In this document: positions 9,269 to 42,730 of the stretch, piece by piece
How positions within the stretch are numbered: position 1 is the first letter of the stretch
Layout of the letters: every line of letters starts with the position of its first letter
Assembly: GCF_001194135.2 (NCBI RefSeq)
Contig: NC_068994.1
Span: 59,611,184 to 59,662,584, forward strand
From: Octopus bimaculoides
Lineage: Eukaryota
Length of the DNA: 51,401 nt
Direction of reading: 5' to 3'
Notes under the pieces: model-generated
Told to the model about the DNA's origin: nothing
Databases searched by the model: none
The model's input: the letters and a program-made list of their open reading frames with translations, nothing else
Translations under genes and position numbers: made by a program

Positions 9269-9880
9269 NNNNNNNNNNNNNNNNNNNNNNNNNNNNNNNN
9301 NNNNNNNNNNNNNNNNNNNNNNNNNNNNNNNNNNNNNNNNNNNNNNNNNNNNNNNNNNNNNNNNNNNNNNNNNNNNNNNNNNNNNNNNNNNNNNNNNNNN
9401 NNNNNNNNNNNNNNNNNNNNNNNNNNNNNNNNNNNNNNNNNNNNNNNNNNNNNNNNNNNNNNNNNNNNNNNNNNNNNNNNNNNNNNNNNNNNNNNNNNNN
9501 NNNNNNNNNNNNNNNNNNNNNNNNNNNNNNNNNNNNNNNNNNNNNNNNNNNNNNNNNNNNNNNNNNNNNNNNNNNNNNNNNNNNNNNNNNNNNNNNNNNN
9601 NNNNNNNNNNNNNNNNNNNNNNNNNNNNNNNNNNNNNNNNNNNNNNNNNNNNNNNNNNNNNNNNNNNNNNNNNNNNNNNNNNNNNNNNNNNNNNNNNNNN
9701 NNNNNNNNNNNNNNNNNNNNNNNNNNNNNNNNNNNNNNNNNNNNNNNNNNNNNNNNNNNNNNNNNNNNNNNNNNNNNNNNNNNNNNNNNNNNNNNNNNNN
9801 NNNNNNNNNNNNNNNNNNNNNNNNNNNNNNNNNNNNNNNNNNNNNNNNNNNNNNNNNNNNNNNNNNNNNNNNNNNNNNNN

Positions 9881-10525: not shown

Positions 10526-13500
10526 TACATACATACATACATGCATACATACATACACACATACATAGGGAAAGGGGGGAGTGGGAAGGAGGTAAACCGG
10601 ATAATAACAGTTTTGATGAATTTAGTTTCTTAATTTTCGTTCTTTCTCTTTTTCACTTTCTTTCACGCGAATTCTTTCCTCTCCATCTCTTCGACGTTCC
10701 CGTCTACTGGATAACCCCGTTCAAATCAAATCTATTTCTTTGCTTAAATATATTAGGCTTTGTAAAAGTTGGCCACAACGAAGCTCACGATCATTGATTT
10801 TGTCATCTTTAAATATATTACGATGTCTGATCATTAATATGGAAGGAAAAGATAGAGTAACAGACACAAAGGAGGTGGGGGTGGAGACTGAAAGAAAGAG
10901 AAGGAAATGGAGAGAGGGAAAAGAAGGAGAAGGGGAGGGACACGAAAGGAGAGAGAGAGGAAAATTAAAAAGAAGAAAAATTTAGAAGAGAGAGAGAGAG
11001 AGAAAAACACAAAGGAAGAAAAGAAAAGAAGCAAGAAGGGAAAGAAGGAGCGAGAGAGGGAGGAAGGGGGGGGGAGAGATGAAAGGAAGATGATTTGTGT
11101 GTCAGGTGAACTAGAAACGGCGCAAAGTTTTGTATCGGTGGACTATATTTGAAATTAGGGAAGGTGTGTAAAAGTAGAAAGAAAAGCTTGTAAGACACGT
11201 GTGAAAAGAAGCAGAAAGAGGAGGAGGAGGAGGAGGAGGGGGAGGAAATGTATTTGTAGGGTAGCAGTGAGAGGTACGACAAATATGTGTGGGTGTGGGT
11301 GTGTGTAATGACAGACCATAATTGTATTAGCTATGTCAAAGTGAAGTTGACCTGTCAGAGCTAAATATGGTGGCTGCAATGTTACAAATTTTCAAATATT
11401 CTGCTGGACGGGTGTAGAATTTTCCAGATTATATCCTGAAAGATCTGATAACTCGGCTTATGTGTGCCAGTCAGAAAAGATTTTTCATCTTAACATTTCT
11501 TGTCAATGAGTTAATTTCGCAATGTCACCAAAATGAGGTTTTTCCGAGGAAAATACAGACTAGATAGCTTTACAGACACAATAGCTTTAAAAATGGAATT
11601 TCGTTGAAATTCTTCGACTTTTTAAATGAGTTCTCTAAAAATATCAATTTTTTTTTCTTTTTTTTTTTTTTTTGAACTTGAATTTAGTTATTAAGGTTAT
11701 CCAGCAGATTCAATGTTGCTCAAAAACATTTCGCAGAAGTCAGAAAATATTCGTAAACACTCGTATCTGTTTTTTTTTTCTCTTAACGTCGACAAAGGAA
11801 CTTGGGATTATCTGCTGAATTTTCTGACCATTTTACTTCACTTATATTTTATTCCATTGTATATATTTATCAGGTACCTATTTTCTGTACTCTAATTATA
11901 TTTCTCTCTCAAATTTACCATTTATTTATTTCTATACAATTCCTTTCCTTTCATCCCGTTCTATTCTAGTGACATCTTTATTGGCTGGAATGTTTTCTCT
12001 CTATTTCCGTACCCCGTCAACAACAATCTAACTTTCCTTACAACTTTCAGCCGTCTCTTTTCATACCATTTCACTTTCATACACCTTTTATTTTTAAATC
12101 TTCCTTTCTGTCTTCTTTCTCAAAACATGAAGACTTCCGCTCAGAGTAACAGCGCGCGCTTTTCAAGAGCGTTTATCCAGTGGTTGTCGAAATGTTGGAA
12201 CGTTAACACCTGGTTCTTTTTCGTCACCGTTTTGCATTATCTCATTCAAATGTAGACACTAATCTATCTACAAGCTTATGGCTCGTCTAACTCGACATGG
12301 AATTTCTACCTCGCCTCGCTATCACTTCAAAACTTATTGGATATTTTAGATCTGCATCCAAGTACCGGAGCTAACTACCTTGATGTCTATTAAGGAATTA
12401 ACTCGTGTCTCATACACCCTGTTGTCTTGTACGCTTATCTCTGTTGTGCCAGGTACTTCATGTGTGAGCAAGGAATAAATTATGTTTGCTAACCAAAAGT
12501 ATTACCTTCTGATTGTTATCGTTACCTTTATGTAAAACATGCATTTATACGTTTCAAACCGTCTTACGTGCACACATCTAAATATATTTCCTAAACTGGT
12601 GAAGCCCAACTCTTTACTTACCTCTTGTTACATTTGTATTCCTCCGCCACTAGCTTTTAAAGAGCGGAGGAACGCAGCACCAGTGTACTGCTGCGCTGGA
12701 GCGAAGTAATTCGACTGCTTTGCTATGCTACAGTTTTGTTGTAGGATTTGATAGAATCTAGGCAGATCAACATGTAGGACGCCAGTAATGGCTACGTACA
12801 ACAATAACATAGGGTTCATAGTGAGATAAAACAACCGTAAAGGTAAGATACTGTAGATATGTAGATATATTAGTACTAAATCCACTTCAAACCGTAGATC
12901 CGACTCAAGGTTGGTTCTTTGTACAACGTAGATATAAAAAAGAACACAAATCGGGTTTAAAAATGAACACAACTGTTTGGGCAGAACTTTTCATTGATGT
13001 CTTCATAGAATGCACCACAGCACAAATCCACTCTATTCCGGTGTAAACAAATATAAACAGGTGGGATCAGCGGAAATATCTTTAATCTTTTCACTCCAAC
13101 AACGTAAAAAGATAAACCGCCAATAACGCACAAATGCATGCCACCACCACCACCACCACCANNNNNNNNNNNNNNNNNNNNNNNNNNNNNNNNNNNNNNN
13201 NNNNNNNNNNNNNNNNNNNNNNNNNNNNNNNNNNNNNNNNNNNNNNNNNNNNNNNNNNNNNNNNNNNNNNNNNNNNNNNNNNNNNNNNNNNNNNNNNNNN
13301 NNNNNNNNNNNNNNNNNNNNNNNNNNNNNNNNNNNNNNNNNNNNNNNNNNNNNNNNNNNNNNNNNNNNNNNNNNNNNNNNNNNNNNNNNNNNNNNNNNNN
13401 NNNNNNNNNNNNNNNNNNNNNNNNNNNNNNNNNNNNNNNNNNNNNNNNNNNNNNNNNNNNNNNNNNNNNNNNNNNNNNNNNNNNNNNNNNNNNNNNNNNN

Positions 13501-13748
13501 NNNNNNNNNNNNNNNNNNNNNNNNNNNNNNNNNNNNNNNNNNNNNNNNNNNNNNNNNNNNNNNNNNNNNNNNNNNNNNNNNNNNNNNNNNNNNNNNNNNN
13601 NNNNNNNNNNNNNNNNNNNNNNNNNNNNNNNNNNNNNNNNNNNNNNNNNNNNNNNNNNNNNNNNNNNNNNNNNNNNNNNNNNNNNNNNNNNNNNNNNNNN
13701 NNNNNNNNNNNNNNNNNNNNNNNNNNNNNNNNNNNNNNNNNNNNNNNN

Positions 13749-25026: not shown

Positions 25027-25244
25027 TGGGGGGGNNNNNNNNNNNNNNNNNNNNNNNNNNNNNNNNNNNNNNNNNNNNNNNNNNNNNNNNNNNNNNNNNN
25101 NNNNNNNNNNNNNNNNNNNNNNNNNNNNNNNNNNNNNNNNNNNNNNNNNNNNNNNNNNNNNNNNNNNNNNNNNNNNNNNNNNNNNNNNNNNNNNNNNNNN
25201 NNNNNNNNNNNNNNNNNNNNNNNNNNNNNNNNNNNNNNNNNNNN

Positions 25245-25282
<38 letters not shown>

Positions 25283-25284
<2 letters not shown>

Positions 25285-25446
25285 GATGGGCTTCTTTCAG
25301 TTTCCGTCTACCAAATCCACTCACGAGGCTTTGGTCGGCCCGAGGCTATAGTAGAAGACACTTGCCCAAGGTGCCATGCAGTGGGACTGAACCCAGGACC
25401 ATGTGGTTGGTAAGCAAGCTACTTACCACACAGCCACTCCTGCGCC
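25283..25446 (-). mobile_element. SINE family B head (A/B-box-like and CORE-like region)
   Basis: Reverse complement reads GGAGTGGCTGTGTGGTAAGTAGC...GGGTTCAGTCCCACTG...CCTTGGGCAAGTGTCTT. Adjacent to (TA)n and a gap. Confidence 0.85.
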
Positions 25447-25820: not shown

Positions 25821-26079
25821 TTAAAGGAGAGATGAGAAGAAAAAGAGAAAAGAGAGAGCTGCAAGTAAGAGGGAAGGTGAGAGTCGCTGGATGGGACTGC
25901 CATCTATAGGCATACATGTGTACTGCTTGAGGGCCTCAATTTGGCTGATGAAATTGGGGCCAAGGTAGGTCTTGTAGTTCTGCTTCTCTTCTGGAAGCTG
26001 CATCAATCGAACAGCAGAATCGGTGAACAAGAGATCGTTGTAGTAGGTTCCAGAATCGAACATATGGAAATCGCCATCG
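25821..26079 (-). CDS. MELTF: Transferrin-like exon 14 (DGDFHMFDS...DLLFTDS...YLG...CMPIDGSPIQRLSPSLLLAALSFLFFFSSLL*)
   Basis: F.MF.S, DLLF.D and Y..YLG motifs. Terminal hydrophobic tail with no cytoplasmic residues. TAA at 25823-25821. Confidence 0.93.
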
Positions 26080-27586
26080 CTGGAAAAGAAAGACAAGGAG
26101 GACAGGATAAAGATCATGGTGCTCACACACTCTCCCACTCCCCGTCTTTCATACACTCTCCGACTCCATCTAACACCCCCCACACACACACTCCCACTCC
26201 ATTTTACACCCCCCCATACCTTCACTCCACCTTACATCCCCATACACATTCCCACTCCACCTTACCCCCTTCCCCACACAGTCTCCACCTTAAAACCCTC
26301 CCCATACACATTCCCATTCTNNNNNNNNNNNNNNNNNNNNNNNNNNNNNNNNNNNNNNNNNNNNNNNNNNNNNNNNNNNNNNNNNNNNNNNNNNNNNNNA
26401 CTCCACCTTGCAGCCCCCACCCCACCCCAGTCCATATTGTGTCCCAAAATAATCAAACAAATATCTATAATTACGTGTCTGATGAGAAAAACTGTTGTCC
26501 GTAATTGAGGAGATTCCAGTAATTTTCAATTGTGCTGTTGTCTTTATAACCTGAAATGGAAAAAAAAAAAAAAAAAAAAATATTCCTCAGTTTATTCCAC
26601 TCAAAGACACAAACACTTTGCCTGTGATAAAAAGGAAGAACTGTTCAAATCCACAAATCATTTCTGCTGACACAATTACCATTCTGGGGCGATGTTCGCT
26701 AAGCCAACATGTAGTTCCCAACCTGCTAGAAATAGAAGCCAAATGCTTTGTGTTGGCGAAAGGTAAGAGAAATATTTGAATGAGTGGAAATCATGTTTTA
26801 TGTTGGGAAGAAGACAAATTTAATACTTAAACAGACAAAAAAGGAAATTCCAAAAGGTCGTTTATTGTTAGTCACATAATAATGAGGGCTGAGCCCTTGA
26901 ATAAGTGCATGCAGCTGTGTGTAGGGGTTATCATTGTGTACGTGATCACCAACTCACTTTCCTTGATTATTTTTCAAACCTGTTGACATTCCTTATATTC
27001 TCCCCCCTCCTCCTTGCACTGACACTGTTGCCCCTTCTACTTGACACCTCCCCCACTTCTACTTGACACCTCCTCCCCTTCTGCCCCTCACTAATTTCTT
27101 TATCCTTCAAAACCAATTGACAATTCTTTTGTCTCCTTCGGTTCTGTCCAAAATAGTAGACTTCTTCCTAACTTCAGAAAACTTATTTCAACGTTTCAGT
27201 TATTTATACACAAGCAATATAAGTTCTGCTACACAATACATTATACACACAAGATTATACACTAGATATTATATATATATACTAGTTAATGTATACACTA
27301 GATATTATATATATATAGAAGTTGTATACTAGTGTATTAAAGAGCCGCTCTGCCTTACTTCAGGTTTTAAAAGCATCCTGGAGAGAAAAACTGTCTGAGA
27401 AACTCTGAGTGTGTGTGTGTGTGTGGTAAATGAGTCCATGGTCCATGTGGTTAAAAAGTTTGTTTTGTAACTGAGTAGTTCTGTATTTGAACCCACAGCA
27501 CTTTGTACATCTGTCTACTACTACCTTAGCATCACATTGGCCAATGTTCTGCGAGTAGACTTTAGGAGACAACAACTGCATCAATC

Positions 27587-27647
<61 letters not shown>

Positions 27648-30019
27648 GAAGCTGATCTCAGGATGCTGAACCTCATGGAAGATGACAAAATGCAGCAGCA
27701 GCAGCAAATGATGTGATGAAGCAGAAGAAAGGATCTGCTCATCTGATGCCAGCATGGATAGAAAAAGAGTCTGATGGTGAAGGTGGTGGGGAGACAGCCA
27801 TTAAACAACAACAACAACCAAAGAAAATGCAGCAAGAAAGAAGGAAAATATGAAGGAAAAGGAAGCAAAATGAAGAGGGAAAAGTAAAGAAGTAGACAAA
27901 GAGAAAGAAGAAACACATCAAAAGCAAACTGCATGACCGATTGACTGACCAAGGGTCATTTTTGTACTTACTTCCAGTAACAATGGCATTTGCAGGAACT
28001 TTACCAAGATGGCATTTCTCCCAGTCATCGATGTTAGCACGACCACCACCTTTACACAACAATTCGTAGTCATCAGAGCGCCGGTTCCTGGCCCACTTTG
28101 CATGGTTCCGCCCATCCGTATTATCCCTAGGTGTCAAGTGACGAACAAATGCCACATCTCCGCCAGCTGCAACATAATAAAAAATCACAATAATTCATCA
28201 ATCAGAGGCGACTAACGAGAACCCATAATGAACTCCAAACTTTCTGTAAATCACAGTACCACCATGGGACTGCACAGATAGTTAGTCTGATTGAGCCATT
28301 CTAACCTTCTTTACATTCGTTTTGAAGGAAGAGAGGAACTATAAATAAAAAAATAAATAAAAACCCTCGAATCCTATTCCTTTCTGTTCTGGAACTGGGT
28401 TTTTGACTGAGAAAATTTCAACAGGATTTTAACAGAAATCAGAGAAACGGCCATTGTTTATTCTTGTTTCAAAAACTTCTTTATTCTCTCTTGGTTGGCT
28501 CCACTTTTCCAACAAACATATCCTTACTCACACTTAACCCATTAACCATTCTAATGAATGAGACTCTTCAAAGAGTCACATTCTACGACCATAGAGTTAA
28601 TTACAACACTCCCCTTAATTCACTCACACAATCCTTCAAATGACAGCTGTCAATCACTCTATACACCACACCTTAATAAATGCTGCTGCCAACTCTTTCT
28701 CTCTCTCCTGCCTTTGTACTCCCTCAACCAAATGACAGGAGTCAATCAAGAAATTAATTCAAGAGTCAGGAACTTTATGCAATTCCTCACTCCTTCAAGA
28801 TGCCTCCTCCTCCTCATCATCATCATTAGCTGACATTTCTCTTTCTTTTAGACACCCAGGGTATCCAGTTCTTTTAGACACCCAGGGTATTCAGTTCCAC
28901 GGCCATACTTACATACAGCATCAGCTTTATTTCAAAATTAATACTCACACTCGACGAGACAACGGAAAGCGCCGTTTGCACCATAATACTGTTCTTCACT
29001 GTTCCTCTGACATTTTCGGAAACCTTCAGCGCCACAGCCTTCACACAAACTGATAGACGTTCCCTCTGAATTATATTCCTTGTCTAAGGCACCAGGGATA
29101 CATGCCCGGATAAACAACTCTCCTGAAAACACAATATTGACATTCTTTAGCAATGGACATCTGTGAGTAGAGATTACGAATATTAATACTGAAACATGAA
29201 GAGGGGTGACGGGGAGAGATGTAAAATGAATTCCTCCTCTTGGATAATCCAGATTATCTTTTGAAGAGTCTCACCTCCACTCACCTCTCTCCAATTCACT
29301 CACTACTTACCAATATTCCTGAAAGCATTACACTCTTCAGGGATGAATTGCTCTGTGTCTATGTACACACCAAGCGGTATTACCCATCCGTCCCCTCGTC
29401 CGACCCCTGCTTGACAGGCTCGTTTTTCTGAAAAAAAACCAACAAACACAACAAATAGAGAAAATCACATACAGACATAATGATCATAATGATGCTGTTG
29501 CTGATGAAGATGATTATAATGATGATGATGATGAAGAGGAATAATAATAATAATTTGACTTTCATCCTTTGGGGGTTGATAAAATAAGTAGAGCGTCTTA
29601 ATTGGTACGTCACACATACTGAGAAGAGCAGTATCGCTGTGAATTTGCTTCCCTTTACCCCCTTATTTTCTTTTTTCATTCTTCCCTTTTTTTCTATCAC
29701 ATGACTTTGTAAATGAACAATCTGGTGTGTTTATTTTGATGGCCTACCTATGTATACAGCCAGTTTCTCTGGCCTAGGTGTCAGGAAGACACTTGGCAAG
29801 AAATGGAAGCAAAACTGAAAGAAGATAAGAATAAATTTTTCTACTCACTTTTCATATTAAATAATGTCATAAAAGATTCTGTCTTTTTCGCAATAGCGAC
29901 AACATGGAATGACATGGTCATGTCACCATAATCTTCAGCAGCAATTGGAATCAGGTTATAACGTCTGCAACATAAATATTTCACTTTGATTGATGGATAA
30001 AAGTGTGTGTATATATACA

Positions 30020-30078
<59 letters not shown>

Positions 30079-31941
30079 TAAAAATTAATAATTAATTAAT
30101 AATTAGTAATTTTACCAAGTAGTTCGGTGTGTTAAAAAACCGTTATCAGTAAAAAGTTATATAAACATAATCAAAATTAGGGCTCAGCTCTCCACTTCCA
30201 CATTTAATTCATTTCTGTAAAAATATGAAATGTGATGACATTTTGAGGCTTGTTAAATATCTCAATCAATTATCTTAATTAAAGTCATCAGCATACCTGC
30301 CAGCCGTGTAAACATCTCCAGCATCAAGTGTCACTAAGTCAGCCACTCCCTCTTCAATGAGCTCCATGCAACCGATGGCACTCTCTGCCAGGATGCAGTC
30401 AAGTTCAGGGAAGATGTTCTTTGCCTTTAATGACATCATCAAATCCTCACATTTCATCTTCTCTGGAAGAGAGGTCACACACCAACGGGCAACGTGCAGA
30501 GGGCATGTGTTGAGAAGATTCAGACTTTTAATGTAGTCAGTTCCTGCAAAGACAAAATCCATCAGTATCACCAACATCCTGATGAGGGGGTTAGAGAGAG
30601 AGAGAGAGAGTTCGAATCACAGGAACCAAACCTTTTTTCTTTCAAACAAGTCATGTTGTAACAATGTTAAATTCTTTCATGTCCAAACCTTTAACGCAAT
30701 CTTCAGAGCTTAACACAAAAAATAAACCAAACTCACTAATGTCAACTGTCTCAGAAGAAAAAATTATGTATTGACAGAATAAAAGGAGACATTGCATAAA
30801 TGAGTTACTCAATAAATAGCCATTCCTTACTAGTTCTACCAAACTCTCTTAAACCTCTCCCTTCTTACCCACAATCTCCAAGCAGAGCACAGTGGCTGCC
30901 AGTTTGAAAGTGATGGACGAGCAGCCATCAGATCGGGAGTACGTGGAAAACTTTGATAAATCCATTTTCTCACATGGAAATGGACAATAACTACTCCCCC
31001 CCCCTGTTTAATGGTCAACAATAGAAAACAGTTCACATTTTTAAAACTAGATCCACACTGAGGTATGGCTTCGTCTGGTGTAGAACACCAAAGCAAATTT
31101 GCTAATCTTAACCTTTTTGTTACCATATCTCTGTAAAAATATAAATACAGACTTTTTCGTTTGTCAATTAATTTTGAAAATAATGAAGAATTTAGTAAAA
31201 CAACTTTGTTATTATTAAGCTGGTGTTTGGAATTTAAATAAACATGAAATTTTGATAAATTTGTTTAATGTAGATCACTTTGAAACGGAAACTTTATATC
31301 ATAGAATTAGGTGCCAGTTTTGGGTGGATCAAGAGATCAATATTCTAATATTTCATTAAAGATTTAGACAAGGGTAAATTGATCAAACTGCCAGATCCAT
31401 TTGGACATCACAATAATGGACATCATGACAAATTCATAAAATGTGATTCAATATCTACGTCAAAGAATGTTGAAGAACTGTCTGTAGTTTGGCAATAAAA
31501 GTTACTTACCAACCCAAGAATAGTAAGAATTATCTAACTGCAATTCTTCAAGGCCAACAGTTCCATCAGTAAAGAGGAGGTTACGTTCTGCATATTTGTT
31601 ATACTGGTTGGAATTATATAACTCGAAACTGTTAGAATTTGCACCAAAATAACCATCAATTATGGTCAGGAAATTCTTAAATGCTGTCAGTTCCACATCT
31701 GCCTTGGCTCTTGAAGCCATCACAATGTGTGAAGGAACAATACCCCAGTTGCAAGATTCATATTCAGAAACTTCCTTTATTCCACCATTTGGACAAACCA
31801 AACGGAATTCCTGCAGGAAAAGAGGTAAAAAAAATATCATAAAAGAAAACAATAAAATGTACAATAAGGAAATAAATGTTGGAGGTTAAGTAAGGGAGAT
31901 AACTACATTGAGATTTTATATATATATATATNNNNNNNNNN

Positions 31942-31979
<38 letters not shown>

Positions 31980-34900
31980 CTATATATATAGTAGACTACT
32001 CGTGACCCGTTGAGTCACCAGGGAAGTCTGAGTTCCCCAGCAACAGAGTTTTGTGTTTTGTAGGGTTTTTTTTCTTTTCCAAATGTGACATCGAAATCAC
32101 ACATAAATGACACCTTTCCCCAGAAAAGGAAATATTTGTATATTTCTTGCACGTCCTGCTACCATATAATGGGTATTTTGGGTCCTTTAGCCGTTATGTG
32201 GTGGCAGGGTATGCTAGAAGTAGCAGCTAAATCTTTGGAGGTGAAATAATACGTTGAATGCACTCGAAAATAAAACCTATGGAAAAAAACTATTTCACAC
32301 CAAGGTTACAAACAGATCTTTTACAAAATATTTTCCGTATTTTTAAAGTCATTTTAACCATAAAATATTTTGCCCATCGCAATGTGTCGAATGGAAAGGT
32401 TAGGGTTTCTCCCCTTCCAGGGTTATTTTCAGAGTATTTTCCCATAATGTACTGTTTGGGGTATTTATACCCAAAGCCCTGAATACCTGTGCCACCATCA
32501 CAAGCACTTTTACATGTGCCACCAGCATGGATGCTTCTATGTGGTACAGGTACAGACACTTCTATGTGGCACTGGCATCCTGAAGTCTGCAAGACTAGAA
32601 TCTCTTTGTTGAGAGAGTGATGTAGGGGACAGGCCTGCATGCATGGACAACTATGAATTTACTCAGTTTCACACGAATCTTATATCATTAACCATAAATC
32701 AATGGTATTCTAGCCATGACCATCCCATCTTTTTGACAGGTATCCAGGATCACATTATCTACTGTGTCCTTTCTAGTTTTTTTTTTTTTTAAGACAAAAT
32801 GAGATGAAGATTTGGCTGGTATTTTTAGCATGCAAAATGACCATATACTTGTTATCTCATTCTCAACATTGTTATTTTAATATTCACTTTTCCATGTTTG
32901 CATGGGTTGAACAGAGTTTATTGAGGCAGATTTTTCCTGCAGCCAGACGCCTTTCCTGTCACCAACCCTCTCCTGTTTCCAAGCAAAGGAATATTCTCCT
33001 CCAGGGCCAGACAGGTTTACCACAGAAGACGGGAAACAAACAGCATTGCTTTTATGACACAGTGACAATCATTTACAATAATCATGCACACACACACACA
33101 TATGATGGGCTTCTTTCAGTTTCTGTCTATCAATTCCATTCAAAAGATTTTGGTCAGCTTGGCACTACAGTAAAAGACATTTGCCCAAGGTGCCACACAG
33201 TGGGACTGAACCCCAAACCATATGGTTAGGAAGCAATCTTCTTACTCACACAGCCATGCCTGCATCTATAACTCATTATTCCTTGATTGGATAATTCAGG
33301 TTGAAGAGAAAATGACATATAATTGTGATATAAGAATGTAAATAATGCTGTACACACAGAGGCACACAGAGGCACACGTGTGTGTGCCTCTGTGTTTTAA
33401 GGTCCTACTTACATTTTCCGTAAGGATACTGTTAGCTACCATTTCTTTCACAGTGTTGTCACGGAGAAATGCCATGTCACCTCTGCCAGCTTCCAAACAC
33501 TTGAAAGCGCCATCATATCCTGAATAAGGGTCACGCATGGTGCAACGCTCATTGCCAGAACCACTGCAGCTGTCACAGATCGAGTTGGGATTGTTTCCTG
33601 CACACAAACCAAATAAATGATTAATAAAAATCTTTAATAATTAGTTAATTTAGAGATAATGTCATTGTCAGTTGAAGAAGTTTGTCTCATAATCCCAAAG
33701 CCTCGAGTTTGATCTCAGCTCTTTGTAGAGTCTTAGATGAGAGTCTCCTTGCCTTGCGAGCGAAACCAGGAATAGAGAAAGTCTGTCAAATGGCGTCCAG
33801 AAGGTACAGCTTTGTCACATAGACTGGGTCTTGCTTTTTCACTCACTCAAAAAAATTACATTCAGGGTCTGTTTATAGAATACTCAGAGAGTTCTTAGAT
33901 TAATTCAAAGAGAAGCTCATTCCCTTGATTGAACTGCTAAGACTCATTGTTGGAAGTGGACGAGGAGACCTTTATTGATCCCCTGCTCTGTAACCCCAAC
34001 CCTGTTTCTGCTGAATGCAATGATGATGATGATGACCCTGGGTTCTTTCAACCCTAATTACAACCAACAAGGAAAGCCAACAGAAGCCAACAGAATGGGG
34101 GTGATGATGTATCATTAATATTATAGATGGGGTGGTGGTGGTGAGACAAACATTTTCTGGATGCGTGGGTGGGCAGCAAATCCAATTCCTCTTCTAAATA
34201 CAAGACTTTGATACAAGGTATAGATAGAGTATACCAATAAGCAGCGGGAGCATTGTAGATTTGACAAGTCTTTCAATAAATTGCTATATTGAATTAAATA
34301 CAATTTAGGCTGAAAGTGTTTTAAAGATGGAAAATTTCATGAAGACAATATGAAGATGAATTCTGTGGTTGTAAAACGATGGAAACCTAAAATTTAGTTA
34401 AATAATGAATCATTGTTAATTAAGAATTTCAGTTTTAAATGTAACAAGTAATAGTTTTTAATTTATTTTGTTATGAAAAATGTCTAATAGAAAATTAATA
34501 ACCCAAAGTCCTGAATTTCATTCTTTTTTACAGCTTCTAGAACAGGGGTATCTTAGAAATAATCTTGTCACAATGTGGTAGATGACTATTCCTTGGTCAG
34601 GTTCAAGTAAGAATAGTCTTAAGAGAGGCAAGGACCTCCTTCCAAAACACAATATACAATAGGTGGGGGTGAAAGCATTCCTCAAATAGCTTAGGTCCCC
34701 CATTACACAGAAACTGCAGACTCCTGCTGTGAAGATCAACTCAAGAGGAGATAATAGAATATAAGGAAACAAAATACTTACCAAATGGGTTGTAGTTGGC
34801 CTCAAAGCCACCAGGCAAGCACATACCACCAAAAAATGCTGCCACACTATTTCCTATAGAATTACAGTCTTTGATTTCCAACATTTGTTTTTTAATCATT

Positions 34901-37900
34901 TCTGATACAGGGTACACCCAGCCAGCTGCATTACCAATACCTGAAACACATCAACAATTGAATTAAATAGGAAGAAAAAAAAAAAAGAAAACATGACAAC
35001 AATAGCAATATTGTATTTGATACAGATTGACAGAGCAATGAGTGGTAGTAGAGAGAGAGGTGGGGGGAAGAGCTTGAACATTGACACATTGAGAGAAAAA
35101 GAGTATAACACACACACACACTTTACATCAGCCGGCTGCTCTCCCCGTGTTCAGGGGTCAGCTTGCCTAAACTCCCCAGCTCCCTCTATGTCGCACTACA
35201 TGCATTCAACCAATCAGATTCTTGTTTCCAGTCCATTCTTTGTTGTGGTCAGTTCACAAACGTTTTTGAAAAGCTCTGGCTGTCTTCTCCATCACAATTC
35301 TTGTTAAGATGATCTGGGGAAGTGACTCATGGTGCATTATAATTCTGTGGCCTTGATTCTCAACTATACGAGTCTTTAGACTACCAGATTTTCTAGTACT
35401 GCAGCATTTGACATGCTGAATTTGCAGCAAATCTTGCCCAGTTTGCTAAAGGCTTCTCATCGTTTTTTTTTCTCTCCATAGCTGTGTACTTTGTTGAAGT
35501 TTCTACCCTGAAAAAGGACAACTTATCAGCCACAATTACTTTAAATGCTACGTCTCTTGAGGTGAAAGTCTTTTCCATTCTTATAGATTCTGTTTTAGCT
35601 TTAATTATTCTTTGAGTAACTTCTTTATATATATATATACACACACATATATTGTCTAAATTGTGATGATATTTGGTGACGGGGTTCAGCTTGTCTGTGT
35701 CTGTCCTGTGTTTTTTAAAATTTTCTTTGTCATCCCTCTGTACCACTTTTTCCATTCCATATATAATCGTATATCTTGGCTTGGCTTCAAGATATCCAGA
35801 GAGGCATGTTCACATCTGTTTCAAGTTTTATGATGCCCAACAAGTGCAATTCAAGACAAACAGGTCTGACCACAGATGCCACAGGAGTGGGTAGGTCGGC
35901 TGATCAGGGAGGCTTGTAATGTCCTTGTTTTCCTTTCTTTTTTTTTTCTCTTGTTGGCAAGGATGGCCATGCAGATGTCTTCAAAGGACTGAGATGCCAG
36001 GCTTTGTGGTTAGTGACAAGAACAGACCACGGTGGGAAGGAACGTGACAGGCATTGAGAGATTCCCTTAGGAAATCCTTGTACTTTTTCTTTGGTGCTTT
36101 TCTATCATAAGAGTATAATTAAAATTATCTTAAAGATAAATTCATTAACAAAGAAAACTAAACAATGAATAAACAAACAAAAACAAAATTGTCTTACTTG
36201 GAAAACAGATTCTCTTTCCTTCCATTGAGTTGATTGTTATCTGAGAATCGGCATTAACGACAAGTACAGAGTAGAATTTCAAAGGATCAGAGTCTGAAAA
36301 CGGTTGAAAAAAGAAAGTGGAAATTTAGACATTCTTGCAAAACGGAATGAAAGGTAAACAGACTTCTCCAGATAATTCTAGATGTGGACCAGGCTGGGTA
36401 AACTTTTATGTATTTTTCCCACTTTCATCGGTAGTTTTGTTTGAATATTTTTGACTGGCTTTGTGCCGGTGGCACGTAAAAATCACCATCCGATCATGGT
36501 CAATGTCAGCTCCACTGGCCCCTGTGCCGGTGGCACGTAAAAAGCACCCACTACACTCTCAGAGTGGTTGGCATTAGGAAGGGCATCCAGCTGTAGAAAC
36601 ACTGACAGATCAGATTGGGGCCTGGTGCAGCCTCCTGGCTTCCCAGACCCCAGTCAAACCGTCAAACCCATGCCAGCATGGAAAGCGGATGTTAAACAAT
36701 GATGATGATGGTGAGGATTTTGTGTGTGGGGGTGCAATGCTGGTTGAAGTTGTTTAGCAATAGGTCCATCCAAAGCTTAAGCAGGCCTCTGATGAGAAGG
36801 TTCTCGATCAGTGGACCGTCCTGTCTAATTTCAGGGAGTATGTATTGACCACTACATTACCCAGGGTGTCTTTCATTCTTTAAAACAGTAAGGGACTGAT
36901 CTGAGGCTGATATGGCTGATGTTTCTATCATTTGCAAAGTAAGGTAATATTACCCTGACGAGTAGACATCATTCCATGTAACATTGTGAATGAAAGACAC
37001 TGCTTGTATGAGAGTGGCACTCGCTTACAACCATCACTGAAAGTCAAGGCAAAGACACACTAACACGCGCACACACACACACATGTAAGCATGGGTTGTG
37101 ACCACTGAGGACATGCATAGGCTTGAAAGAATACATATATATATAAGTGATAGTCTTCTTTCAGTTTCTATCTGTTTAATCTTCTAAGAAGGCTTTGATT
37201 GGCTGGGGGCTGTAGCAGAAAACACTTGCCCAATGTCCAATGCAGTGGGACTGAATCCGGAACTATGTGTCCAAGGAAGCAAGACTCTGCCCCTCTTAAT
37301 ATTCCCTGCCAGTCTTCCTTCTGCTCCCTATTGAGCAGAAGGTTTCTGCTCTTTGAATGTATTTAGCATAGTTTAATGGAACAACAGAAAATCAATCATC
37401 TTAATTTTAAATCAGAAGAATAAATAAAAAATCAATAACTATTAAATAAACAAACACTGTAACATCCAGAGTCATTTATTTGTTATTATTTGATAATTTG
37501 AAATATAAACAAAAGCAAGAAAGAAAATTAACAAAATAATTTTCATAAGGTTTCATTCTTTACATGTAAAAATGGCTGAAACAATAACCAAGTTGTAAGG
37601 AATGGAATGAGTGGATGGTTTGGAAGAAAGAACTTGCAGAACCAACCAAATGATATTAGTGTCTGTGAGAGAGAGAGAGAGAGAGACGGGGAGGTGGCAG
37701 GGAAAGACAAAAATAGTATAAGAAACTGTAAAATGAAAACTCACTGGAATATTTCTCCGCCATAATAGGATGCATGTAATGGTATTTGCCAGCATAGAAC
37801 CCATGACCAGGATCCAATGTTATGATGTCAGCTTTATTGGTTTGAATATTTTCCATACATTCAAAACTAAAACAGCAATTAGGAAAATTAACTTTCAACT

Positions 37901-38864
37901 AAAATAAAAAATAACAACAGCATCAAAGAAAAATAATGAACAAATAAATTAAGGATTTTGAAGGAGATTTCTTAGACGGTGCTTAATTATGTGTGATTTA
38001 CAAGTAACTAAATGAAACAAAAAAAAAAACCAAACTTACATATCAAACATCAGCAAACATTTTAATTTATATTTGGCAGCTCGTGGGTATTGAACAATGT
38101 TTTCTAACTTCTTCTGAAGGTCCTTACATTTTATTTCTTCAGTAGGATTCACCACACACCATCGAACCACAATCTCTGCAACACACAAGAGAGAAATGTC
38201 ATTCAGTCAGAACATAATAATAATTCTTTCTATTGAAGGCACAAAGCTTGAAATCTGGGGAGAGGGGATGAGTCAATTACATCGACTCCAGTACTCAAAA
38301 ATTGAAGTACCAAAGAGATCTTTATGATGGACAAGGACAAGGGAGATATCCATTACACTCACCACAACAATATTTGGTTGACATAATTTCACAAATCAGG
38401 AATAGATATTGAACAAGTGGATAAAGAATGGTTGATGACACTTCCATGCTAGCAGAGTTAATCTTGAACAAGTGAAACCACCCCAAAAGCACTGACAGGC
38501 CAAGCGTTTCTGGAAATTGTTCATAATTCTGAGCCAAAAGTCCTCCAAGATAGCTCATCCNNNNNNNNNNNNNNNNNNNNNNNNNNNNNNNNNNNNNNNN
38601 NNNNNNNNNNNNNNNNNNNNNNNNNNNNNNNNNNNNNNNNNNNNNNNNNNNNNNNNNNNNNNNNNNNNNNNNNNNNNNNNNNNNNNNNNNNNNNNNNNNN
38701 NNNNNNNNNNNNNNNNNNNNNNNNNNNNNNNNNNNNNNNNNNNNNNNNNNNNNNNNNNNNNNNNNNNNNNNNNNNNNNNNNNNNNNNNNNNNNNNNNNNN
38801 NNNNNNNNNNNNNNNNNNNNNNNNNNNNNNNNNNNNNNNNNNNNNNNNNNNNNNNNNNNATATA

Positions 38865-40350: not shown

Positions 40351-40497
40351 GCTCACACACAGAGATATACTTGTAAAACAATTAAAATAATCAATAAAAA
40401 AAATGTTTGTAGTTGTTGACTTACCATCTTCCGCTTGTGACACTAAAATCGACGTCAATATGAACCAGAGGACAGTGAGAGAGAAGACGGACGCCAT
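25821..40497 (-). CDS. MELTF: Melanotransferrin-like bilobal transferrin-family protein, 14 coding exons, 2256 nt CDS (~751 aa), signal peptide and GPI-type C-terminus
   Basis: Manual exon assembly: 40497-40425, 38175-38040, 37866-37745, 36293-36198, 34940-34782, 33597-33413, 31810-31510, 30543-30297, 29964-29849, 29427-29311, 29122-28949, 28166-27972, 26550-26475, 26079-25821. All introns are GT-AG, phases match and there is no internal stop. Two lobes each carry VRWC, TLD, GW..P, GAF.CL..G.GD.AF and LLF.D motifs. The symbol denotes family resemblance, not proven orthology. Confidence 0.9.
26130..26425. repeat. Degenerate ~28-30 bp C-rich (+)/G-rich (-) minisatellite in the last transferrin intron
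   Basis: Recurrent CTCCACCTT/CCCCATACACATTCCCA units interrupted by the gap at 26321-26399. Confidence 0.7.
26475..26550 (-). CDS. MELTF: Transferrin-like exon 13 ((S)YKDNSTIENYWNLLNYGQQFFSSD)
   Basis: Phase 1-in/phase 2-out exon that bridges exons 12 and 14, with long polypyrimidine tract plus cag and a gtaatt donor. Resembles W.LL...Q..F. Confidence 0.82.
27972..28166 (-). CDS. MELTF: Transferrin-like exon 12 ((S)GGDVAFVRH...DYELLCKGG...CHLGKVPANAIVTG)
   Basis: GDVAFV.H, NTDG.N...WA, DYELLC and CHL motifs with canonical splice sites. Confidence 0.95.
28949..29122 (-). CDS. MELTF: Transferrin-like exon 11 (ELFIRACIPGA...CQRNSEEQYYGANGAFRCLVE)
   Basis: C.PG and YYG..GAFRCLVE motifs with canonical splice sites. 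Confidence 0.93.
29311..29427 (-). CDS. MELTF: Transferrin-like exon 10 (KRACQAGVGRGDGWVIPLGVYIDTEQFIPEECNAFRNI)
   Basis: Aligns to KKSCHTAVGRTAGWNIP, with canonical splice sites. Confidence 0.9.
29849..29964 (-). CDS. MELTF: Transferrin-like exon 9 (RYNLIPIAAEDYGDMTMSFHVVAIAKKTESFMTLFNMK)
   Basis: L.P..AE.Y and VA..KK motifs, with ttgcag and gtgagt boundaries and consistent frame. Confidence 0.9.
30297..30543 (-). CDS. MELTF: Transferrin-like exon 8 (interlobe linker and C-lobe start ARWCVTSLPEKMKC...ADLVTLDAGDVYTAG)
   Basis: RWC...E..KC and TLDAGDVY motifs with canonical splice sites. Confidence 0.95.
31510..31810 (-). CDS. MELTF: Transferrin-like exon 7 (EFRLVCPNG...CNWGIVPSHIVM...NLLFTDG...YYSWV)
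   Basis: L.C..G, VPSH (His249-equivalent) and LLF.D motifs with canonical splice sites. Confidence 0.95.
33102..33262 (-). mobile_element. SINE family B head in transferrin intron 6
   Basis: Same consensus as 25283-25446. Confidence 0.8.
33413..33597 (-). CDS. MELTF: Transferrin-like exon 6 (NNPNSICDSC...DPYSGYDGAFKCLEAGRGDMAFLRDN...EN)
   Basis: PY.GY.GAFKCL..G.GD.AF motif containing the Tyr188-equivalent, with canonical splice sites. Confidence 0.95.
34782..34940 (-). CDS. MELTF: Transferrin-like exon 5 ((S)IGNAAGWVYPV...FFGGMCLPGGFEANYNPF)
   Basis: AGW..P and FF...C.PG motifs with canonical splice sites. Confidence 0.9.
36198..36293 (-). CDS. MELTF: Transferrin-like exon 4 (SDPLKFYSVLVVNADSQITINSMEGKRICFP)
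   Basis: Aligns to transferrin YYAVAVVKK...LxGKKSCHT, with ttcag and gtaag boundaries. Absent from the ORF track. Confidence 0.88.
36460..36712 (+). mobile_element. SINE/RTE-type repeat family C 3' part with (GAT)n tail
   Basis: TTGGCATTAGGAAGGGCATCCAGCTGTAGAAA...CCCATGCCAGCATGGAAAGCGGATGTTAAA(CGAT/GAT)n. Near-identical copy at 51210-51385; related copies at 39110-39480 (+), 15725-15830, 32470-32600, 32920-33070 and 44220-44420 (-). Confidence 0.75.
37150..37290 (-). mobile_element. SINE family B head, diverged, in transferrin intron 3
   Basis: CTTCTTTCAGTTTC...AACACTTGCCCAA...GCAGTGGGACTGAATCCGGAAC. Confidence 0.7.
37745..37866 (-). CDS. MELTF: Transferrin-like exon 3 (FECMENIQTNKADIITLDPGHGFYAGKYHYMHPIMAEKYS)
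   Basis: C...I....AD..TLD motif containing the Asp63-equivalent, with tttag and gtgagt boundaries. Confidence 0.92.
38040..38175 (-). CDS. MELTF: Transferrin-like exon 2 ((E)IVVRWCVVNPTEEIKC...KLKCLLMFD)
   Basis: N-lobe start motif VRWC....E..KC, with tgcag acceptor and gtaagt donor. Confidence 0.9.
39543..39586. other. Perfect inverted repeat: 17-bp GC-rich arms, 10-nt spacer
   Basis: ACCACCCGTTTTCGGCG-TAACCCTAAT-CGCCGAAAACGGGTGGT. Confidence 0.95.
40425..40497 (-). CDS. MELTF: Transferrin-like exon 1 (signal peptide MASVFSLTVLWFILTSILVSQAED)
   Basis: ATG at 40497-40495, hydrophobic core and an SQA-type cleavage site. gtaagt donor, phase 1 matching exon 2. Confidence 0.8.
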
Positions 40498-41004: not shown

Positions 41005-42730
41005 GTCATTTGATTGTAGCCATGCTGGAGCACTACCTTTTTAGTCAAAGAAATCGACCCCTGAACTTATTTTTTGTAAACCTGGTACTTTGGTATTTAT
41101 TCTATTGGTCACTTTGGCCGAACCGCTAGGCTATGGGGATGCAAACACACCAATATCGGTTGTCAAGCGATGGTAGGGGAACATACACAGACACACACGC
41201 ATATGTACACGACGGGCTTCTTTCAGTTTCCGTCTACCAAATCCACTCACAAAGCTTTGTTCTGCTCAAGGCTATAATAGAAGACACTTGTCCAATGTGG
41301 CACACAGTGGGACTGAACCTGGAACCATGTGATTGGGAAGCAAGCTTCTTTATTTCTTTTAAATTGCCATAAAGGCATTACACAGAGGCGGGGGGGGGGG
41401 CACTACAACACATGTGGGGACATAGAACAATTAAAAATATAAAAATAAAATATGATATAATGAATGATACATGAAAATCAACATGAAGAACAAATTAAAA
41501 AATATGATAACATGAATGATATCTGAAACTGATATTATAAAGGGTGTGCTACTCACCCCACACTGAGTAACACCACTCGCCACCTCTGGGTCCTAAGTCC
41601 CTTTTCTCCTCCAGTCCAATCCTTTTCCCCCTTTCTCCATCACATAGTAATATCATTCTCTCCGCCATGCATTTGTAACCTTTTTCACCGGGAGGGGGGG
41701 TGTCTTCTAAATTTTGTGGTGTCTGTNNNNNNNNNNNNNNNNNNNNNNNNNNNNNNNNNNNNNNNNNNNNNNNNNNNNNNNNNNNNNNNNNNNNNNNNNN
41801 NNNNNNNNNNNNNNNNNNNNNNNNNNNNNNNNNNNNNNNNNNNNNNNNNNNNNNNNNNNNNNGTCTGTCTTTTCTTCTCTTTTCTCTTCCGTCTCTACAA
41901 CTGTATCCTCAGCCATTGTCCCCTGTAGAGGGAAGTATGCTTTAATGTGGCCCTTTTGGTCACATTTAAAACAACGTGGTACTCTGCCCTCTACCCATGC
42001 CCTCAGCACGATTTCCCCCAACATCACCGTCTCTGCCAAGTTCCTCCGCCTGAATAATTAGGTCAAGTGTCCTTCTTCTGTTTCTGTGGCTTGGAGGACA
42101 ACCATCTTCTCCTCGCTTCCAACAAGGACAGCTGCCGCCACCCAAGCCACTTCTATATCTGGTGGAATTACTTCTACCCTCACCTTGGAAGTCTTTCTTC
42201 CAAGGTATGTGGGCAGAGGCACTACCTCCTCTGCCACACTCGCCAGCCTCCTCGCCTCCTCTACTCTCCTAAATTGGATGACCATTGTCCCATATCTTCT
42301 TCCTTTGTACGTTCCCTCAGCGCCTTTTCCACTTCTGCCTCCACCTGTTCTGCCATTTTTCCTTTCAATGAGTACACCTTATAGGTGATCGTTTTCTTCT
42401 CCATCTTCTCCATAATTCCTTTGGGGAGGGACAACTTCATGTCACCGCCCACTTCTCATACTCCTTCAGACCAGCCAAGTCCAGCTCCCTTCGCTTCACC
42501 TCCGTGGCTTCAGCAAAACTCCTTGTCTTCAACACTCCCTCCATCTTTATGACCGCCGTTGCCAGCTTCGCTTTCTCCTCCTCCAACGATGACAACTCAG
42601 ACCTGTCAAAGTCTGACTACATCTTCCAAGCAACACAAAAAACTACGTCCAACTCTTACAAAATCCAGACAGCAAATAACCTGACACATGCACGGAAGCA
42701 AGCTTCTTACCACACAGCCACGCCAGCGCC
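41005..42730 (-). mobile_element. tRNA-derived SINE (family B) split by the above insertion (41005-41350 plus 42694-42730)
   Basis: Removing 41351-42708 restores ...GGAACCATGTGATTGGGAAGCAAGCTTCTTACCACACAGCCACGCC, matching the intact copy at 25283-25446. Confidence 0.85.
41351..42693 (-). mobile_element. ORF1-only (gag-like, zinc-knuckle) non-autonomous retroelement with 15-bp TSD
   Basis: TSD GGAAGCAAGCTTCTT at 41336-41350 and 42694-42708. Frameshifted ORF from ~42622 to ~41549 contains CFKCDQKGHIKAYF (decayed CCHC). A-rich 3' end and no RT motif. Confidence 0.75.

Follow-up and report, generated by a model that had tools for sequence, protein, structure and literature searches.

A melanotransferrin-like protein of Octopus bimaculoides from the Tsf2 lineage lacks the canonical iron site in both lobes

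The melanotransferrin gene of Octopus bimaculoides encodes an intact transferrin in which, as an earlier note on this DNA had claimed and our alignments bear out, neither lobe has the canonical Fe3+/carbonate site. The gene is an orthologue in the protostome Tsf2 / 'melanotransferrin-like' lineage. As ligand replacement is typical of this lineage in molluscs and arthropods alike, we regard the gene as an ordinary one and see no novel type of receptor in it. The best explanation, to which we assign a probability of roughly 0.6, is that its product is a GPI-anchored epithelial junction protein of the Tsf2 lineage whose metal binding is vestigial.

Results

Gene structure

The analysed window, a stretch of 51,401 nucleotides from contig NC_068994.1, encodes XP_014782585.1 ("melanotransferrin [Octopus bimaculoides]", 751 aa; P0001) without any difference. 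Threading this protein through the window yields 14 exons on the minus strand with a CDS from 40497 to 25821, AG acceptors and GT donors throughout, and a reading frame free of stops and frameshifts. The gene is thus intact, as had been proposed; the span originally given for it, 27972-37866, comprises exons 3 to 12 and so falls short of the full CDS. The features are listed below in window coordinates, with equivalent transferrin positions in brackets.

Exon 1, 40425..40497, minus strand: start codon and signal peptide (MASVFSLTVLWFILTSILVSQAED), aa 1-24; exact P0001 threading, GT donor
Exon 2, 38040..38175, minus strand: N-lobe start (VRWCV...), aa 25-69; AG/GT, Pfam PF00405
Exon 3, 37745..37866, minus strand: N-lobe; D88 (D63), codon 37814-37812
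Exon 4, 36198..36293, minus strand: N-lobe; F117 (Y95; TTC 36276-36274), P142 (T120; 36201-36199)
Exon 5, 34782..34940, minus strand: N-lobe; N146 (R124; AAT 34932-34930)
Exon 6, 33413..33597, minus strand: N-lobe; Y223 (Y188), R241 (K206); 185 nt, likewise in Argonauta
Intron 6, 31811..33412, minus strand: 10-N gap 31932-31941 in a (TA)n/(GT)n microsatellite; one SINE-like repeat copy 33094-33243
Exon 7, 31510..31810, minus strand: N-lobe end; H285 (H249), T338 (K296)
Exon 8, 30297..30543, minus strand: inter-lobe linker and C-lobe start; D431 (D392)
Exon 9, 29849..29964, minus strand: C-lobe; F459 (Y426; TTC 29909-29907)
Exon 10, 29311..29427, minus strand: C-lobe; A485 (T452) and R489 (R456), within the conserved GVGRGDGW
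Exon 11, 28949..29122, minus strand: C-lobe; A566 (Y517)
Exon 12, 27972..28166, minus strand: C-lobe; the molluscan family's most conserved segment (TDGRNHAKWARNRRSDDYELLCK); N635 (H585)
Exon 13, 26475..26550, minus strand: C-lobe, aa 641-665
Exon 14, 25821..26079, minus strand: C-lobe end, candidate GPI omega site D725-G-S, spacer, hydrophobic tail 735-751, stop codon

The encoded N-terminus is hydrophobic (KD 2.09, residues 5-20), and the exon structure is the same in Argonauta. Three of the 12 assembly gaps in the window fall within the gene span, all of them in introns (26321-26399, 31932-31941 and 38561-38859). The gap in intron 6 separates a (TA)n from a (GT)n run, with exon 7 lying 121 nt and exon 6 lying 1471 nt away; because the protein is collinear with the transcript-derived orthologue P0003 across the exon 6/7 junction, and exon 6 measures 185 nt in both Octopus and Argonauta, a hidden exon at this point was ruled out. 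We assign P0003 to a cuttlefish relative, since Sepia pharaonis MFI2 lies within its 90% cluster. Flanking open reading frames in the window gave no Pfam match above threshold, and ARAGORN returned nothing above threshold on the window.

Fold and C-terminus

The octopus protein is a member of the transferrin superfamily: Pfam PF00405 matches it twice, in two stretches (E 9.7e-147), 25 Cys columns are invariant in an alignment of 40 sequences, and the AF2 model (mean pLDDT 90.8, pTM 0.79) adopts the two-lobed transferrin fold, matching transferrins with a Foldseek probability of 1.00. Its closest PDB structure is human melanotransferrin, 6XR0 (sequence E 2e-153, Foldseek E 1e-69). At the C-terminus, the last 17 residues (735-751) are hydrophobic (KD 2.25) and have no charged tail. 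They largely coincide with a modelled helix (734-750), which follows a linker with pLDDT below 50 (residues 724-732) that holds the candidate omega site D725-G-S; the candidate motif D-x-(S/A) is conserved in four cephalopods. Judging from these sequence features, the protein, a presumed secreted glycoprotein, is probably GPI-anchored to the outer leaflet.

Residues at the two iron sites

Residues were mapped by HMMER alignments to ovotransferrin and human melanotransferrin and by three MAFFT alignments, all of which agree. The N-lobe has D88 (D63), F117 (Y95), P142 (T120), N146 (R124), Y223 (Y188) and H285 (H249); of the canonical Asp63-Tyr95-Tyr188-His249 site with Thr120/Arg124, it lacks Tyr95 and both anion residues. 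The C-lobe, with D431 (D392), F459 (Y426), A485 (T452), R489 (R456), A566 (Y517) and N635 (H585), has lost three of the four metal ligands of the canonical Asp392-Tyr426-Tyr517-His585 site with Thr452/Arg456. The dilysine positions are occupied by R241 and T338.

Every substitution listed in the earlier note, in either lobe, was recovered in these alignments, including F instead of Tyr at positions 95 and 426 and the R and T at the dilysine-trigger positions, and the codon coordinates 36276-36274 and 29909-29907 proved exact, both reading TTC. The remark that A-to-I editing cannot restore the residues is also right, since none of the required changes is A-to-G. Y118 (Y96), which adjoins F117, was considered as a substitute ligand and rejected as a default: this position is Y, F, H or K in iron-binders and non-binders alike, and it lies one residue along a beta-strand. 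We infer that the octopus protein has lost transferrin-type Fe3+ binding.

Lineage and relatives

In an NJ distance tree of 52 sequences with 100 bootstraps, the coleoid proteins group together (100%) within a molluscan group A (98%), which in turn joins arthropod Tsf2 (100%). Vertebrate and echinoderm melanotransferrins fall together (57%) and not with the Tsf2 clade; the NCBI name "melanotransferrin" for the octopus protein is a similarity label.

The molluscan 'melanotransferrin-like' proteins, for example the predicted proteins of Haliotis rubra, Patella, Pomacea, Biomphalaria, Mizuhopecten, Mya and Liolophura, are 44-53% identical to the octopus protein over the full length, equal to it in length, and share the C-terminal tail. 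They also share its C-lobe pattern, F/A/N together with D and R: among 32 molluscan orthologues, F459 is found in 27, A566 in 24 and N635 in 25, D431 is invariant, and R489 is present in 31. T120 and R124 are lost in this group except in the chiton, and within the clade both conchiferan molluscs and arthropods, Drosophila Tsf2 included, are without the N-lobe anion residues. Most of the molluscan proteins, however, keep Y at position 95, and many carry Y188F (10/32) or H249N/D (20/32); Y95L (4/32) occurs in the Biomphalaria and Bulinus orthologues. In the coleoids compared (O. bimaculoides, O. sinensis, O. vulgaris, Argonauta, Sepia pharaonis for the N-lobe only, and two transcriptome assemblies), the octopus substitutions are conserved. 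Y95F was found in every coleoid checked and is the only listed substitution restricted to them; D63, Y188 and H249 are kept in all of them.

The substitutions are therefore less singular than the earlier note suggested, as the C-lobe F/A/N is the molluscan majority state and the loss of T120/R124 is common to arthropod Tsf2 (P and S in Drosophila). They are largely standard in a molluscan subfamily, though not in an experimentally characterised one: in the literature searched, we found no experimental studies of the molluscan orthologues. Nor do the parallel Tyr-to-Phe changes, which had looked non-random, form a single event: since the C-lobe change is old and mollusc-wide and the N-lobe change coleoid-specific, the two arose at different times, each by a single TAY to TTY step.

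Arthropod Tsf2 forms the sister clade (100% bootstrap) and resembles the octopus protein in its two-lobed fold, in a predicted signal peptide and a hydrophobic C-terminus of putative GPI type, in the replacement of T120 and R124, in R at K206 and N at the C-lobe H585, and in its better conserved C-lobe. It differs in keeping Y95 and Y426, both F in octopus, and in having T or M for the C-lobe Arg kept by molluscs; insect Tsf2 has an extra 60-100 aa. Drosophila is the only species in which Tsf2 has been tested for function and iron binding. That Drosophila Tsf2 retains an N-lobe iron site, as had been assumed, is correct for D, Y and Y and for reported iron binding (relayed in PMC3708341 from Tiklova 2010), but not for T120, R124 and H249, which are P, S and D.

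Human melanotransferrin (MELTF/CD228), the best structure match, is likewise bilobal and, as is probable for the octopus protein, GPI-anchored, with an inactive, iron-free C-lobe that lacks the anion-binding residues (PMC7804310). Its N-lobe, in contrast, has DYYH with Thr and Arg and binds iron, and its C-lobe has decayed differently, keeping Tyr, Tyr and His while losing Asp, Thr and Arg; the octopus C-lobe retains Asp and Arg but not Tyr, Tyr, His or Thr.

A second molluscan transferrin family (Haliotis cracherodii P0040, Lottia, Patella, and O. vulgaris P0134/P0206) is also bilobal and 31-36% identical to the octopus protein, but keeps canonical ligands and clusters with transferrins of annelids and of Penaeus/Tityus (88% bootstrap). 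The O. vulgaris member has a canonical C-lobe, D-Y-T-K-Y-H, and the second paralogue is likely to be the iron handler in octopus. The 688-aa transferrin of bigfin reef squid haemocytes, for which no anchor is reported (PMC6934447), probably belongs to this family.

Saxiphilin, the inhibitor of carbonic anhydrase (ICA) and the sea-urchin major yolk protein share the transferrin fold and degenerate iron sites, and the first two are among the distant PDB matches of the octopus protein. They are, however, vertebrate or echinoderm offshoots of different branches, soluble and not of GPI type, with no phylogenetic affinity to it. The octopus protein is not of the saxiphilin type: Pfam finds only PF00405 and PF12974 in it and no thyroglobulin inserts (PF00086), which are present only in the saxiphilin-like P0073.

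Conservation and selection

The octopus gene is under strong purifying selection, with dN/dS of about 0.07-0.13 overall, 0.067 between Octopus and Argonauta and 0.107 between two decapodiform sequences. Full-length orthologue contigs of 2.4-2.8 kb from other cephalopods were found in Logan assemblies of sequencing runs; as their open reading frames are intron-less, they are evidently transcripts. Conservation is higher in the C-lobe than in the N-lobe, at 87.5% vs 64.2% between Octopus and Argonauta, 70% vs 50% across molluscs and 69% vs 57% in arthropod Tsf2, compared to 56% in either lobe of vertebrate serum transferrins. In the 32 molluscan orthologues, it is spread over long C-lobe segments (592-616, 652-676, 563-587), and the GVGRGDGW stretch that surrounds the lost anion site ranks with the best conserved ones. 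The N-lobe ligand columns rank at the 31st-59th entropy percentile, the average for that lobe.

Discussion

In Drosophila, Tsf2 is a core septate-junction component (PMC8006247; PMC3708341) and is said to play no major part in iron uptake (PMC11094094; PMC10117857). If orthology carries this role over more than 500 million years, the octopus protein would serve epithelial septate junctions in a structural or trafficking capacity, acting through protein-protein contacts made mainly by its highly conserved C-lobe. The C-lobe site was probably lost early in molluscan evolution, and the N-lobe site would then have decayed piecemeal by lineage, with Y95F arising in the coleoid stem. Iron handling in octopus would fall to the separate paralogue with its canonical C-lobe site.

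An alternative, which we consider unlikely, is that only the C-lobe is metal-free. The N-lobe would bind Fe3+ or another ion non-canonically through D88, Y223 and H285, perhaps helped by water or additional anions, and assembly or trafficking at the junction would still depend on metal, as has been reported for Drosophila Tsf2. In insect Tsf1, two Tyr and two carbonates coordinate the iron, and among human N-lobe mutants Y95F keeps weak iron binding while Y188F loses it. As D63, Y188 and H249, three of the four protein ligands, are kept in all coleoids checked, weak or non-canonical binding by this lobe is conceivable. In addition, Drosophila Tsf2, with neither T120 nor R124 and with D in place of H249, reportedly binds iron and requires it for junction assembly (PMC3708341, at second hand from Tiklova 2010), so that the loss of both anion residues alone is no proof that metal binding is gone; if such iron dependence held clade-wide, an iron-free coleoid protein would fit our preferred explanation poorly. 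Against N-lobe binding, however, every coleoid combines Y95F with the loss of both anion residues, and serum transferrin mutants without these two residues no longer bind iron, a loss to which the iron-free state of the human melanotransferrin C-lobe, lacking both Thr and Arg, is also attributed (PMC7804310). Moreover, the molluscan N-lobe ligand columns vary like average ones (Y95 to F/L/H, Y188 to F/E, H249 to N/D), unlike those of a conserved site.

The earlier note had instead suggested that the protein may be a cell-surface transferrin-fold receptor for a non-iron ligand, with saxiphilin among its parallels; spelled out, a specific small molecule would be bound in one of the clefts. Strong purifying selection and a non-random C-lobe cleft, with D431 invariant, R489 nearly so, F459, A566 and N635 in the majority and GVGRGDGW highly conserved, are compatible with such a function. 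Yet C-lobe conservation extends in long segments beyond the cleft-lining positions, the pattern is clade-wide and the one studied member of the clade is a junction protein, and beyond transferrin domains without thyroglobulin inserts we found no ligand-specific feature that would support a receptor. With orthology pointing to the septate-junction protein Tsf2, we regard this proposal as improbable, more so than N-lobe metal binding. The notion that the gene model stems from faulty assembly or annotation, or that the gene is a pseudogene in decay whose substitutions reflect lost function, which the gaps within the gene span might invite, can be dismissed, given that these gaps are intronic, that splice sites are canonical with no stop or frameshift, that transcript-like full-length orthologues and a confident AF2 model exist, and that intact exons under purifying selection reject pseudogenisation.

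Returning to a junction protein with vestigial metal binding, one can ask whether the iron-free C-lobe, and not the N-lobe, is the functional module across the Tsf2-type clade, its cleft (invariant Asp, the near-invariant Arg in a conserved R-G-D, and Phe/Ala/Asn for Tyr/Tyr/His) binding a partner other than a metal, be it a protein or an anionic ligand. Coleoids, in which N-lobe Tyr95 is gone as well, would then demonstrate that septate-junction assembly needs no transferrin-bound iron outside insects. We offer this extension tentatively and would expect it to fail sooner than to hold.

The contribution is modest and incremental; degenerate ligand sets in insect non-Tsf1 transferrins have reportedly been discussed already by Najera et al. 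(2021, Insect Science). For mollusc genomes, it means that the annotation "melanotransferrin" should not be read as iron carrier, and that iron in cephalopods is probably handled by the other paralogue. In coleoids the protein is a naturally occurring Y95F variant devoid of both anion-site residues, and this, with the markedly better conserved C-lobe of the Tsf2 type, offers a cheap test of whether the iron dependence reported for junction assembly in Drosophila is general or peculiar to insects.

Results

Gene structure and assembly gaps

An ORF listing and a six-frame reading of the window between 20 and 42 kb yielded a series of minus-strand transferrin-like exon fragments, and concatenation of the draft exons led to a 751-residue Octopus bimaculoides protein annotated as melanotransferrin (P0001; XP_014782585.1), which threads onto the window with 0 mismatches; the gene already has an annotation. 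The span originally assigned to it, 27972-37866, holds exons 3-12 complete, including the ligand positions, but the entire gene is larger:

40497-25821, minus strand: coding sequence, 14 coding exons, each with AG acceptor and GT donor
31932-31941: run of 10 N in intron 6 (33412-31811), flanked by (TA)n and (GT)n
26321-26399 and 38561-38859: gaps within the gene span, both intronic

The exon 7 acceptor lies 121 nt downstream of the 10-N gap, and exon 6 is 1471 nt away from it. Hidden coding sequence in this gap was ruled out, because exons 6 and 7 are in phase across the intron, the Argonauta hians orthologue likewise has 14 exons with an exon 6 of also 185 nt, and P0001 is collinear over the junction with P0003, a transcript-derived cephalopod orthologue. 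Where the flanks of gaps were read (31932-31941, 38561-38859, 25035-25244, 9269-9880 and 13162-13748), all abut (TA)n, (GT)n or (CA)n microsatellites, and these gaps look like unassembled simple repeats rather than lost unique sequence.

The window also contains several repetitive elements:

25275-25424, 33094-33243, 37139-37288 and 41201-41350: four copies of an interspersed repeat of ~150 nt, 69-86% identical
5598-7023, minus strand: three adjacent broken ORFs, by eye resembling reverse transcriptase and a LINE C-terminus
41865-42039, minus strand: short ORF with a CCHC zinc-knuckle-like motif (RCFKCDQKGH), adjoining the gap 41727-41862

The ~150-nt repeat, with one copy each in introns 6 and 3, resembles a SINE-type element; ARAGORN found no tRNA-like part in the window. 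The ORFs at 5598-7023, whose Pfam matches all fell below cut-off, are probably a decayed non-LTR retrotransposon. The CCHC ORF, sub-threshold against PF00098, is possibly a retroelement gag fragment, ~1.4 kb upstream of the start codon.

Ligand residues

All residue assignments agreed between three independent MAFFT alignments and HMMER comparisons with hen ovotransferrin and human melanotransferrin, with conserved and locally ungapped motifs around the ligand positions.

Iron- and anion-site positions (human transferrin numbering), octopus residue and codon (minus strand)
N-lobe D63: D88, 37814-37812
N-lobe Y95: F117, TTC, 36276-36274
N-lobe T120: P142, 36201-36199
N-lobe R124: N146, AAT, 34932-34930
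N-lobe Y188: Y223, 33517-33515
N-lobe H249: H285, 31729-31727
C-lobe D392: D431, 30325-30323
C-lobe Y426: F459, TTC, 29909-29907
C-lobe T452: A485, 29410-29408
C-lobe R456: R489, 29398-29396
C-lobe Y517: A566, 28979-28977
C-lobe H585: N635, 27990-27988

The substitutions and codon coordinates listed in the earlier note are all borne out, as is its remark that A-to-I editing could not restore these residues, since none of the required codon changes is A-to-G. The dilysine-trigger positions are occupied by R241 and T338. At the start of the former C-lobe anion-binding helix, within GVGRGDGW, lies an RGD tripeptide (R489-G490-D491; 29398-29390, exon 10) that is the consensus of the molluscan orthologues (GIGRGDGW; Arg in 31/32); it could be either chance or a conserved contact motif.

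Phylogenetic placement

Neighbour-joining analysis of 52 transferrins (724 columns, 100 bootstraps) unites the coleoid sequences in one clade (bootstrap 100). They are nested among gastropod, bivalve and chiton proteins in a molluscan group (98), which in turn forms a clade with arthropod transferrin 2 (Tsf2; 100); vertebrate and echinoderm melanotransferrins group together. On these groupings, the window gene represents the Tsf2-type lineage in octopus, and the NCBI name "melanotransferrin" is a similarity label, not a demonstration of orthology to vertebrate MELTF. Najera et al. 2021 reportedly discussed degenerate ligand sets in insect non-Tsf1 transferrins; a literature search for treatments of the molluscan Tsf2-type group found no paper.

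A second molluscan family (Haliotis P0040, Patella, Lottia, Octopus vulgaris P0134/P0206) joins annelid, shrimp and scorpion transferrins (bootstrap 88). In the Octopus vulgaris protein the C-lobe site is canonical (D-Y-T-K-Y-H) and the N-lobe partly so (S-Y-T-K-Y-D); its 694-residue isoform likewise has a hydrophobic tail. A haemocyte-expressed transferrin of 688 residues has been described from one squid (PMC6934447).

Distribution of the substitutions

Among 32 full-length molluscan orthologues, the octopus C-lobe pattern is close to a rule: D392 is kept in 32/32 and R456 in 31/32, and Y426 is replaced by F in 27, Y517 by A in 24 and H585 by N in 25, the last change being shared with arthropod Tsf2. 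N-lobe T120 and R124 have been replaced in every orthologue but that of the chiton, and in arthropod Tsf2 too (P and S in Drosophila). The chiton protein (Liolophura sinensis, P0024) has a canonical N-lobe anion site, CHTGIGRSAGW (versus window residues 140-150), together with Y, Y and H, whereas the corresponding sequence is CF(P/A)G in both conchiferan molluscs and arthropod Tsf2, which implies either that the site was lost in parallel or that the chiton gene underwent conversion by the other paralogue.

Within the molluscan orthologues, the coleoid-specific change is F at the Y95 position, seen in Octopus bimaculoides, O. sinensis, O. vulgaris, Argonauta, Sepia pharaonis and two transcriptome assemblies; its presence in octopodiforms and decapodiforms makes it older than their split. 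Elsewhere in the Tsf2 clade, Y95F arose independently in a mite (Brevipalpus obovatus, P0159), a flea (Ctenocephalides felis, P0049) and P0131, from a transcriptome assembly; the mite protein has the N-lobe D-F-P-N pattern of octopus, differing by an added Y188F. Other N-lobe ligands vary as well, with Y188F in 10/32 molluscan orthologues, H249N or H249D in 20/32, and Y95L in Biomphalaria and Bulinus. The N-lobe ligand columns fall between the 31st and 59th percentile of column entropy, which is ordinary for that lobe and is the signature of a site no longer maintained.

The earlier note had considered the same Tyr-to-Phe change in both lobes non-random. On this distribution, they are separate events of very different ages; each needs just one TAY-to-TTY step, so that they do not form a coordinated pair.

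Lobe conservation, fold and selection

The better-conserved lobe is the C-lobe, the one without iron ligands, a point absent from the earlier note.

Sequence identity by lobe (C-lobe; N-lobe)
Octopus versus Argonauta: 87.5%; 64.2%
Molluscan orthologues, mean pairwise: 70%; 50%
Arthropod Tsf2, mean pairwise: 69%; 57%
Vertebrate serum transferrins: 56%; 56%

The 32 molluscan orthologues share 102 invariant columns in the C-lobe versus 46 in the N-lobe, and the C-lobe holds all of their most conserved stretches: 592-616 (TDGRNHAKWARNRRSDDYELLCK), 652-676, 563-587 and 481-505, the last including GVGRGDGW.

A confident AlphaFold2 model based on a 40-sequence alignment (mean pLDDT 90.8, pTM 0.79) matched human melanotransferrin (6XR0) best, followed by ovo-, sero- and lactotransferrins, and Pfam found no extra domains in the protein. 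The sole disordered stretch, residues 724-732, coincides with a putative GPI omega site (D725-G-S) and its spacer, and a hydrophobic C-terminal helix (734-750) follows. This arrangement fits a candidate GPI signal; other cephalopods have D-x-(S/A), spacer and hydrophobic tail arranged alike, and the C-terminal tail is hydrophobic too in the other molluscan orthologues, in Drosophila Tsf2 and in one vertebrate melanotransferrin. From codon-aligned coding sequences of four cephalopods, dN/dS was 0.067 for Octopus-Argonauta, with synonymous sites close to saturation, and 0.107 between the two decapodiforms.

Discussion

Several precedents bear on whether the octopus protein could still bind iron. 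The human melanotransferrin C-lobe is iron-free, which is attributed to the loss of both anion-binding residues, and a double anion-site mutation abolishes iron binding in serum transferrin (PMC7804310); a quadruple Tyr-to-Phe mutant of human transferrin binds no iron while keeping its fold (PMC13505439). These cases favour loss of iron binding. Residual, non-canonical metal binding by the octopus N-lobe is an unlikely but live rival, since this lobe retains 3/4 ligands and Drosophila Tsf2, which also lacks both anion residues, was reported to bind and need iron (PMC3708341, citing Tiklova et al. 2010). The earlier note proposed a receptor for a non-iron ligand. Nothing specific supports a dedicated small molecule in this role: the C-lobe cleft has a conserved Asp and Arg that are compatible with one, but conservation runs over long segments of that lobe, Pfam shows no additional domains, and the ligand pattern characterises the clade as a whole and is no octopus innovation.

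Drosophila Tsf2, the one studied member of the Tsf2-type clade, is a core septate-junction component needed for junction assembly, and its loss is embryonic-lethal (PMC8006247, PMC3708341); its part in iron transport is regarded as slight at most (PMC10117857, PMC11094094). Given the junction role and a second transferrin with a canonical C-lobe site, the best reading is that the octopus protein would be a GPI-anchored epithelial surface protein that, by orthology, may act in septate junctions. It would work via protein contacts, mainly through its C-lobe, and would have lost canonical iron binding, with iron handling left to the second transferrin paralogue.
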